Shown here: in pieces, positions 40,870-43,150 of the stretch
How the letters are laid out: each line of letters opens with the position of its first letter
How positions within the stretch are numbered: position 1 is the stretch's first letter
NCBI RefSeq assembly: GCF_001194135.2
Contig: NC_069008.1
Coordinates: 6,982,914-7,032,920 of the forward strand
Length of the DNA stretch: 50,007 nucleotides
Reading direction: 5' to 3'
Source of the DNA: Octopus bimaculoides
Lineage: Eukaryota
The notes under the pieces: generated by a model
What the model was told of the DNA's origin: nothing
Database searches by the model: none
Seen by the model: only the letters and a program-made list of their open reading frames with translations
Position numbers and translations under genes: made by a program

Positions 40870-43150
40870 TTTTTAACTAATTTCAGCTCGAAAGCTGCAG
40901 TCATGCTTGGGCACCACTGTTGGCTTTCCTACACTTTCATATGATATGAGGCATCGGGTGAATGAGGGAGTTTGATGCTGCTGCCCTTATTTGTGTTGCC
41001 TGCCGTGAGGTAGACTCATCTGGAACCTTTGACAGGAGGAGATCCAGTTTTGTGTTGAAGACACCTACATCCACACCATGCAGGTCTCTCAGGCATTTTG
41101 GAAGGACATTGAAGAGTTGTGAGTATTTGAAACCCAAGGTGTTGTTGTATCTGATCCTGTAATTTGATGGCGATGTTGAGATACTTAGCACTATGCAACG
41201 GTGCCCCGTTCTGCTGTTTATGTAACTTTCAATGCCAAAGTTTGTTACAAATCCTTCCAGGATTTTCCAGATGTATATCACTACATATCTTTCAAGTCTT
41301 CGTTCTAGGGAGTGGTTTCTAACTTTTTCAGCCTTTTCCCCTAACTGATACGTTACATTTGTGTAACTTCGCTGGATTGCTTCGAGTTCTATCATTAATT
41401 TTATACTGTGTGATGACCATAGTTGGGGAACAGTAGTTTAAGCGGCTGAGGATATATCTCCTTCAGAGGACCATTACGGTTTTCTGTCCTCTCGTTCTGA
41501 AAACTCGGAAAAATCCATCCGGCTAGCCATTTGCATTTAATTACCAAATTAGTACTATGCACCAAGAAAGATATATCACTAATCACGTCGGATTTGCTGA
41601 TTTACATCGTTACTCACGCACAGTGATTCGCGGATTGCAATTCATGCTGGGGCGGAGTATCTTGGCTGCATTTCGTTCACCTTTGTACACTGGTAGCAAT
41701 TGTGCCATCTGCATAGCTAGCAAGAGTGGCTATCTGAGAAGCTGAGAGTATGTCTGAGAGGGCCACTATGACTAGCAGTGGCTCTAAGACAGTGCCTTGT
41801 AGAACACCACTCACTATTTGTGTTTCTTTTGGCCTTTGTCTTTTATAAAGTCGTGTAGCCACTCTCCAAGTTTCCGACTATGCCAAGATCACGCAGTTTG
41901 TGACATAGCATACCATGGTCGACTTCGTCAAAGACTTTTGCAAAATCGAGATATATTGCGTCTACATTTGAGTTGTTGAGCAGCTGCTTTATCACCCCGT
42001 CGCAGTGCTGTAAGAGCTGTGTCAGGCAGTTTCTACCTGGTCGAAACCATGCTGAGTGTCACTCAGCAAGTCATTCTCTTCAAGGAACGCAATTAGCTTT
42101 CCTGCGGACGATTCCTTCCATGACATGACTTTGTTGATGCATGAGGTCAGAGAGACAGGCCTATGATTTTTAGCATCTTCTCTGCTTCCCCCTTTGAGAA
42201 TAGGGTATATTATTTCCTCTTTCAATTTGCCTGAGAGAAAGCCTTGCAAGAAAGCTCTAAAAAAGAAGCTGCAATAGTTTTGCAAGGGTTAGTTTGCATG
42301 ATTTGAGAAGGATTGTTGGGAATCTATAAGGCCAGCAGCTGGGTTTGTGCCATGTATTACATCGTCTTTATGTCATGTATGGCCAATATTACATTGCCGT
42401 CTTTAATGTCGATGTAACCAATTATTATCGCCTCTTTGGTTACAGGTGAAGGGGAAAAGAAATTTGCTGGTTTGTTCACTAGCCAGTGTCTCAAAAGGCT
42501 AGTGAACACACTTTTGAGCTGTTCGTTCAGTATTTCACTTATCCTCATTGGGTTTCCTGTGAAGGAGCCATCCTTTTGCAAGAGGGGCTCTATCATGTAA
42601 CGTGTTGAGACCGTTTCTTTGGCATAGTTAAAGAACACTTTTGGGTTTGACTTAATTTTATCTATAACCGAGGACACCTTGTCTGCTCGTTCTTTTACAT
42701 GCGATTGATGTAGACTTTTCTCAATCTCTAACAGCGTTTTCTCGGGTGATTTGCAATCTTTGTCCGTCGTTTCATAAGAATTTTCCTCTCTCCAGGGAAC
42801 ATCTGCTTGTGTGTGTGTCGGCTTTGTGCTCCTGGACAGATCTGTTGCATAAGGCTTGCATTACTGACATGAAATGTTTGTTTCATGTCAATGCCTGATG
42901 TAGAAGACATTAAGGCCAATTCTATTTGAGAATCTCTTTTTTAATCGATTTTCAGTTAATTTAATTAAAGTTCAGACTGGAGAGATTTCGGAAGTTTCTT
43001 AAGGCTGTATATCTGTAAGGACTTTTAGTCAGCTCTCTTTTGTCCTGATCCGAGACTAGCGTCGCTGTCATTTTCATACTATGGATGATGTCCATATTGT
43101 TTATGAAGCAGAGATCCAGTATATTATTTGCCTTAGTTTGTTGGAGCAGA
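40870..43150 (-). mobile_element. CR1-type LINE, decayed, retaining its 3'UTR
   Basis: NNILDLCF (APE end), HRPVSLTS, YLDFAK, SGVLQGTVLEPL, SYADG, SLERRLERY...KILEG; same family as 20954-22330; stop at 40937-40939. Confidence 0.92.

Follow-up and report, generated by a model that had tools for sequence, protein, structure and literature searches.

A short interspersed element (SINE) that borrows the structured 3' tail of a long interspersed element (LINE) follows a principle that has been established for decades, and LINE/SINE pairs of the stringent type typically have tails whose stem-loops show compensatory changes. One such stringent pair, UnaL2/UnaSINE1 of the eel (L2 clade), has been proven experimentally, and its terminal repeats are thought to allow template slippage. 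In amniote CR1 elements the 3' end consists of a hairpin and an 8-bp microsatellite, (ATTCTRTG)n, and is taken as the recognition site of the reverse transcriptase (RT). Among molluscs, the bivalve HCD SINEs (CORE, V, Deu and Meta) carry tails of the CR1, CR1-Zenon, L2 or Nimb type, with a homology of 35-61 bp at 72-95% identity in the passages of that study that were matched. The subject of this report is a CR1-like LINE and a short repeat, SINE-A, that occur together in a stretch of 50,007 nucleotides of Octopus bimaculoides DNA (contig NC_069008.1, positions 6,982,914 to 7,032,920), called the window below in its full length. Comparison of their 3' ends with those of related LINEs makes this octopus pair a well-supported further example of the principle: the tails are homologous, they occupy the terminal position in both elements, and their pairing has been conserved through compensated changes.

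SINEs form a very large part of octopus genomes and account for 11.6% of the genome in an Octopus vulgaris annotation of 2026, those of octopus are reported as mostly tRNA-Core and tRNA-Deu, and CR1 is among the active LINE groups in published octopus annotations. Octopus SINEs have also been discussed as drivers of genome rearrangement and of neural transcript diversity, and in that O. vulgaris annotation 893 of the 900 recently active SINE families were unclassified. No partner LINE for octopus SINEs was named in the literature searched, the table of SINE/LINE pairs in a 2013 review has no octopus entry, and a full-text literature search for the tail and CORE strings gave no match. Repbase entries may already note the relation between this LINE and SINE-A.

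The shared tail in the window

A sequence-only reading of the window had proposed that the 3' untranslated region (UTR) of a LINE copy aligns without gaps to the tail of SINE-A, and that both fold at the same position into stems of different but fully paired sequence. The LINE copy contains the end of the endonuclease domain, the RT and the C-terminal domain of open reading frame 2 (ORF2), with several frameshifts and stops. Its RT motifs, read in three-frame translation, are LDFAKVFDEVDH and YADG. After the ORF2 stop the 3' UTR reads ...CAGTGGTGCCCAAGCATGACTGCAGCTTTCGAGCTGAAATTAGTTAAAAATTAGTCTGTATATA and runs into an N gap (40436-40855) that adjoins the 3' end of the element. The copies on which the comparison is based are as follows, all on the minus strand.

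40856-43160, minus strand: decayed, 5'-truncated LINE copy, recognised by RT motifs in three-frame translation
40937-41395, minus strand: intact C-terminal ORF2 segment of 152 amino acids from the ORF list, with the stop codon at 40937-40939, aligning to the C-termini of the related proteins P0001 and P0002
9940-10389, minus strand: SINE-A copy 1, with the tail module at 9964-10008 followed by (AAAAGAGT)n; its 5' end enters the N gap 10390-10438
17395-17773, minus strand: SINE-A copy 2, 5'-truncated, with the tail module at 17411-17455
23176-23560, minus strand: SINE-A copy 3, with the tail module at 23183-23227, in which hairpin 2 has decayed by two mutations
440-660, minus strand: SINE-A copy 4, 5'-truncated and consisting of the 3' half only, found by within-window BLAST, with a decayed tail module at 440-484

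Both strings on which the proposal was based were recovered from the minus strand. The LINE string occurs once in the window, at 40876-40915 without mismatches, and the SINE-A string is present at 9966-10005 without mismatches, at 17413-17452 with one and at 23185-23224 with three; by shuffling, no matches were expected for either. The two 40-mers align without gaps and are identical at 26 of 40 positions (28 of 45 over the modelled region of 45 nt), and in the minimum free energy (MFE) structures a stem of 5 bp capped by a loop of 4 nt occupies the same place in both, CAGCU/UUCG/AGCUG in the LINE and CAGUC/AAAU/GACUG in SINE-A. The two stems differ at two base pairs, each of which has changed on both sides. 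The LINE loop is UUCG as described, but it is closed by a U-A pair and is hence not the canonical C(UUCG)G tetraloop.

Taken alone, the similarity between the window LINE and SINE-A would exceed chance only marginally at the sequence level, with a value of E=0.47 (7.2 bits) when the window LINE tail is matched to an nhmmer profile built from four SINE-A tails. The observation is robust because related intact LINEs were brought into the comparison.

Related LINEs from public assemblies

The frameshift-corrected ORF2 translation was searched against a protein collection, an alignment of ORF2 with its best matches was used for a second search, and the contigs encoding the proteins of twelve of these relatives were read. 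The window LINE is 48% identical to P0001 in this protein alignment (A1). Identity to P0001 is 72% for P0030, 71% for P0002 (a partial protein) and 64% for P0031, and a large, star-like set of further relatives has 36-45% protein identity. In nucleotide sequence the window LINE is 65-75% identical to four intact LINEs, L001, L002, L013 and L014. A second LINE copy of the same clade in the window is closer to one of them.

20954-22300, minus strand: second LINE copy, same clade, found by within-window BLAST, 93% identical in nucleotide sequence to L014

The N gap at 20448-20953 has swallowed the 3' tail of this second copy. L014 is a Logan assembly of a sequencing run, and L001 is a contig labelled as metagenome. 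A repeat that flanks L001 (3238-3289) is also found twice in the window (29144-29260 and 49637-49740) at about 92% identity; it is a different SINE-like repeat, TATTTCTTTACTACCCACAAGGGGCTACAC...CCCAGTGCGTAACTGGTACTTAT. The 93% identity between L014 and the second LINE copy, and this flanking repeat of L001, indicate that the two contigs derive from the genome of the window or from a close relative of it.

All four of these LINEs have an intact ORF2, and each has, 10-25 nt past its stop, a tail of the same layout: GGCGGTGCCCCAGCATGGCC(A/G)CAG, a variable hairpin, CTGAAAC and a short tandem repeat. In these four and in the window LINE the alignment is unbroken from the coding end of ORF2 through the stop and into the tail, which shows that the tail is part of the LINE rather than a SINE remnant next to it. 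When the nhmmer profile made only from SINE-A was used, L001 was matched at E=6e-9, L002 at 3e-8, L013 at 3e-7, L014 at 3e-5 and the more distant L005 at 0.07; besides SINE copies and remnants (window 672-718 and 31430-31471) there was no other match better than E=5. A covariance model likewise recovers both the LINE and the SINE tails. The homology of the SINE-A tail to the tail of this LINE clade is thus secure.

The label "CR1-like" is reasonable for this LINE, and "CR1" itself is plausible but unproven. The features that match the CR1 clade are an ORF2 with an apurinic endonuclease (APE) and RT, and a 3' end with hairpin and microsatellite and without poly(A). Pfam gave no match on six degenerate ORF pieces of the window LINE, and on the intact relative P0001 it found Exo_endo_phos, Exo_endo_phos_2 and RVT_1. 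An upstream ORF1 of 280-456 amino acids is present in the related elements L003, L005, L018 and L019. PHD matches in two related ORF1s were sub-threshold only (E=0.0034 and 0.088), and the distant relative P0081 has a PHD match above the cutoff; CR1-like elements reportedly have an ORF1 with a PHD or esterase domain. The RTE clade was considered in view of several contigs of only about 3.3 kb with a single ORF, and is unlikely given the long ORF1 that related elements carry.

Scans of contig collections with the DNA pattern GGTGCYCMAGCATGRCYRCAG did not add to the set of LINEs. Viral contigs gave no match, and the seven matches in JGI metagenome contigs were rejected as apparently due to chance, the contigs being mostly GC-rich and having no tail after the matched 21 bases; neither scan recovered cephalopod DNA.

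Anatomy of the two-hairpin module

The tail is a module of about 45 nt that consists of hairpin 1, hairpin 2, a single-stranded GAAAC and a short tandem repeat specific to the subfamily. The two-hairpin MFE structure was common to all seven tails that were folded, and RNAalifold agrees with it. Only hairpin 2 had been described from the window sequence; hairpin 1 was overlooked there and taken as plain conserved sequence. Its general form is (U)GGC-G-GUGC / CCCA / GCAU-G-GCC(A), that is, two 4-bp helices with one bulged G on each side. In the window LINE the parts of the module are the following.

40898-40919, minus strand: hairpin 1, CAGU-G-GUGC / CCAA / GCAU-G-ACUG (MFE fold and RNAalifold)
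40884-40897, minus strand: hairpin 2, CAGCU/UUCG/AGCUG (MFE fold and RNAalifold)
40865-40883, minus strand: single-stranded AAAU, then the imperfect terminal repeat AAATTAGT-TAA-AAATTAGT

The two hairpins are conserved in different ways. Hairpin 1 is kept in both sequence and pairing, whereas in hairpin 2 only the CAG/CUG base and the fact of pairing are kept and the loop is free, as can be seen from its form in the other tails.

Hairpin 2 in L014: CAGCU/CAUG/AGCUG
Hairpin 2 in L002: CAGCC/UGCG/GGCUG
Hairpin 2 in L001: CAGC/CCUAGC/GCUG
Hairpin 2 in L013: CAGC/CUUCGC/GCUG
Hairpin 2 in SINE-A: CAGUC/AAAU/GACUG
Hairpin 2 in L005: a 9-bp stem, CAGGCGGCA/AUC/UGCUGCCUG

The GAAAC that follows hairpin 2 is conserved and reads GAAAU in the window copy. 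The unit of the terminal repeat is AAAAGAGT in both L002 and SINE-A, AAATTAGT in the window LINE, AAATT in L001 and AAATGAAT-like in L013. Hairpin 1 recurs in two distant LINEs, L005 and L019, and there its inner pair shows a compensated change from U-A to C-G. The proteins of these LINEs share only 42-45% identity with one another and with those of the other LINEs. The sources of these two are one metagenome contig and one Logan contig, and both elements (L005, 3880-3947; L019, 4515-4567) end in a CAGGAA-type repeat of 9 nt followed by (TG)n.

The LINE 3' element of UnaL2 is an Rfam family. An Rfam search of 40856-41000 found neither the UnaL2 3' element nor a member of any other family at E<=10. 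Over the whole window nothing reached the gathering score, and an E-value threshold applied to the LINE tail and one SINE copy gave only noise.

Covariation of the stems

A covariance model was built from six tails, and eleven tails were aligned to it for counting pairs; this model-based alignment was used because MAFFT misaligned the longer hairpin 2 of L005. Among the eleven tails 94.7% of cells were in standard pairs, compared with 22-41% when the 3' partners were slid by 1-3 columns. Double-sided changes were seen in 6 of 12 pairs, and the observed values were reached in none of 500 shuffles.

A more direct test is the comparison of two tails. Those of the window LINE and L014 differ at 11 of 40 positions, six of which are paired, and these six make up three compensated pairs with no pair broken. 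All three are in hairpin 1 (U-A to C-G, G-C to A-U and C-G to U-A), so that three of its four outer pairs differ between the two LINEs and all are compensated. In Monte Carlo trials with random substitution, all 13 pairs were kept in 0.06-0.9% of trials, depending on the transition bias (P = 0.0006-0.009). The compensated changes therefore arose in an active lineage, before the window copy was inserted. SINE copies that were inserted in the window long ago have decayed hairpins, as neutral DNA should. Between SINE-A and L002 there are differences at 9 of 40 positions. One pair of hairpin 2 accounts for two of these differences and is compensated (C-G to U-A); another two fall in the outermost pair of hairpin 1, where SINE-A has an unpaired A-G, and the remainder are in loops or at the junction.

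One G-U pair of hairpin 1 never varies, and wobble pairs occur in L001 and L005; these can form only on the sense RNA strand, which favors an RNA structure over a DNA palindrome. The earlier proposal that structure rather than sequence is under selection holds for hairpin 2, whose pairing has been maintained by compensated changes among the LINE subfamilies and SINE-A. It does not hold for hairpin 1, which is conserved in sequence as well as in pairing, even in LINEs whose proteins are 42-45% identical.

Proposed partnership, probable donor and alternative explanations

The explanation favored here is a stringent-type LINE/SINE partnership, in which LINE and SINE-A have a common two-hairpin 3' module and SINE-A is copied by the LINE machinery; its probability is put at about 0.8. 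The LINE ORF2 protein would bind the 3' module on its own transcript and start target-primed reverse transcription there, with the terminal repeat helping in priming or slippage, and SINE-A transcripts, by presenting the same module, would be copied in trans. The proposal draws on what is established for other LINEs: in CR1 the hairpin and microsatellite are taken as the RT recognition site, and the experiments on UnaL2/UnaSINE1 support the same picture. We infer RT binding, trans-mobilisation and the identity of the donor subfamily from the tails and their relatives. LINE and SINE coexist in the window, with two LINE copies and at least six SINE copies, and 5' truncation is seen among the SINE-A copies; a 5'-truncated SINE-A is the expected product of LINE-type reverse transcription.

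The way in which the two hairpins are conserved suggests a division of roles, with hairpin 1 and GAAAC read by sequence and hairpin 2 read by its shape or as a subfamily-specific element. A bolder version is a bipartite module. Its hairpin 1 and GAAAC would give the RT a handle that is specific in sequence and deeply conserved (across LINE lineages whose proteins are only about 42% identical), and its hairpin 2 and terminal repeat would be a subfamily "address". This version is speculative, and the odds are clearly against it. If it were true, hairpin 2 and the terminal repeat would decide which LINE subfamily copies which RNA, and the private CAGUC/GACUG of SINE-A would mark either a donor subfamily that has not been seen or an adaptation of the SINE in competing for the enzyme.

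Several points weigh against the partnership as proposed. The sample consists of seven LINE tails and six SINE tails rather than genome-wide consensus sequences, which is a small set. The alignment used for the pair counts was fitted to the model, and the structure was derived partly from the same sequences, so the measure of paired cells is inflated. Folding of single sequences gives only modest z-scores for the tails (-1.5 to -2.9), the fifth pair of hairpin 2 is a C-C mismatch in L001 and L013, and hairpin 2 of L019 is a weak 4-bp stem, GGAC/GAGA/GUCC, without thermodynamic support (z = 0.04). The exact hairpin-2 sequence of SINE-A occurs in none of the LINE tails examined. Finally, six relatives with 30-45% protein identity (L003, L004, L015, L016, L017 and L018) have unrelated short 3' UTRs that end in tandem repeats. 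These six, which contributed nothing to the test of covariation, show that the module is restricted to some lineages of this LINE group and is not universal in it. In four of the six (L003, L004, L015 and L018) the 3' UTR is very short, has no hairpin and ends in repeats of a common (C)AAGTAA-type unit. The distribution of tails suggests that they were replaced repeatedly within the group.

The earlier reading had named this LINE family, or a close relative, as the enzyme donor of SINE-A, and of these two options it is the close relative that is borne out. Over the 45-nt module SINE-A is identical to L001 at 36 positions and to L002, L013 and L014 at 33 each, so that the window LINE, at 28, has the least SINE-A-like of the five close LINE tails. 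A much better match to another LINE had been named as evidence against the proposal; such matches exist, if only mildly better, and they are to sister subfamilies of the same clade and not to another kind of LINE. The donor is therefore probably a sister subfamily of the L001, L002, L013 or L014 type and not the subfamily of the window copy, as judged from tail similarity. The true donor is not yet among the LINEs examined, because none of them carries hairpin 2 of SINE-A. An alternative is that the window LINE's own subfamily was the direct donor and that the tails came to differ by compensatory evolution in the SINE lineage. The two elements do lie in the same window with both hairpins intact in each, but this is improbable in view of the lower identity, of the profile match (E=0.47, against 6e-9 to 3e-5 for the sister subfamilies), of the terminal repeat AAATTAGT, which is unlike the AAAAGAGT that SINE-A has in common with L002, and of the old and decayed state of the window copy.

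The remaining alternatives concern the tail itself. If only the window LINE and SINE-A were compared, the tail beside the LINE could be regarded as a separate SINE remnant or as a chance match between A-rich, repeat-rich ends, since their match is not significant at the sequence level. This can hardly be maintained, and is considered extremely improbable, because independent assemblies contain four LINEs whose ORF2 is intact and in which the tail follows the stop within 10-25 nt, in continuous alignment with the coding sequence, and matches the SINE-A profile at E values as low as 6e-9. It could also be argued that the hairpins are kept for a reason other than RT recognition, such as stability or processing of the transcript 3' end, nuclear export or maintenance of a DNA palindrome, and that SINE-A inherited them passively. 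Such a role would fit the variable loop of hairpin 2, which contrasts with the loop of the eel UnaL2 tail, where a nucleotide is required for function. However, G-U pairs that form only on the sense strand speak against a DNA palindrome, copies decay freely after insertion, and dependence on the LINE machinery is the best explanation for why a non-autonomous SINE retains the complete module exactly at its 3' terminus. A reason other than RT recognition is thus very unlikely, and recognition of the module by the LINE RT remains the preferred explanation.

SINE-A, its relatives and other features of the window

Neither ARAGORN nor Rfam found a tRNA in SINE-A. By eye it has a B-box-like GGTTCAGTCC and a motif ACCTTGGGCAAGT; CCTTGGG is cited as a CORE motif. 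The ACCTTGGGCAAGT motif resembles the CORE domain, and from this resemblance SINE-A would be a CORE-like short element. SINE-A may correspond to a CORE-SINE that Ohshima and Okada (1994) reported from octopus. In every copy of SINE-A an internal TA/TG microsatellite, whose length varies, separates the CORE-like part from the 3' body, and SINE-A may be a source of microsatellites in this genome. The sister SINE listed below also has such an internal microsatellite; judged by eye, its body is only about 60-65% similar to that of SINE-A. The 5' half of its tail (GTGCCCAAGCATGGCC) is nearer to the LINE than the corresponding half of the SINE-A tail is, and a 5'-truncated SINE-A lies directly downstream of it.

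10150-10260, 17600-17670 and 23380-23420, minus strand: internal TA/TG microsatellites of SINE-A
672-1073, minus strand: sister SINE, diverged from SINE-A but alike in head and layout; tail module at 676-720, with hairpin 1 intact and hairpin 2 broken in this copy
31438-31481, minus strand: strongly decayed tail module belonging to one more SINE-like element, matched by the covariance model (11.4 bits, E=0.034)
37244-37335, 22476-22587 and 43588-43644: partial copies found by within-window BLAST

The window as a whole is eukaryotic sequence with 39% G+C and 15 N gaps, and TA/TG microsatellites and short interspersed repeats are abundant throughout it. A large foldback at 43199-43499, which immediately precedes the point of 5' truncation of the LINE, has arms of 114 nt that are 93% complementary and a central 46-nt palindrome of the perfect type. 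It could be an element like a miniature inverted-repeat transposable element, a foldback element or an assembly artefact. At 44175-44812 there are low-complexity ORFs on both strands, rich in Thr, His and Pro, which probably reflect simple-sequence DNA and not a gene.

Comparison with known systems

The tail module supplies a concrete candidate partner clade for octopus SINEs and a means to anchor and date copies with an intact 3' end. Its covariance model can be used for annotating such SINEs, and as a small RNA element of two hairpins it can be tested in retrotransposition assays. Beyond what had been read from the window alone, the analysis adds hairpin 1, its deep conservation and a probable donor among the sister subfamilies.

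The octopus LINE is like amniote CR1 in having APE and RT in ORF2, no poly(A), and a short 3' UTR with a hairpin and a tandem repeat of about 8 nt (AAAAGAGT or AAATTAGT), and also in that the 3' structure is conserved across subfamilies. It is unlike amniote CR1 in that its tail sequence is unrelated, as judged without Repbase, in that two adjacent hairpins and GAAAC are present, and in that the repeat unit varies by subfamily. Compared with UnaL2, the loop of hairpin 2 is not conserved in octopus, and the octopus pair is predicted from sequence, whereas the eel pair is proven by experiment. The bivalve HCD SINEs differ in host, the host here being a cephalopod, and the matched passages of the bivalve study contain no mention of cephalopods and no covariation analysis. 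SINE-A resembles the bivalve elements, which are tRNA/CORE SINEs, as a molluscan and putatively CORE-like SINE with a LINE-homologous tail, here of about 45 nt with 73-80% identity to the intact relatives. It also resembles the eel pair, as in both a SINE of the CORE type (putatively so in octopus) shares the 3' tail of a LINE, with a stem-loop followed by short tandem repeats.

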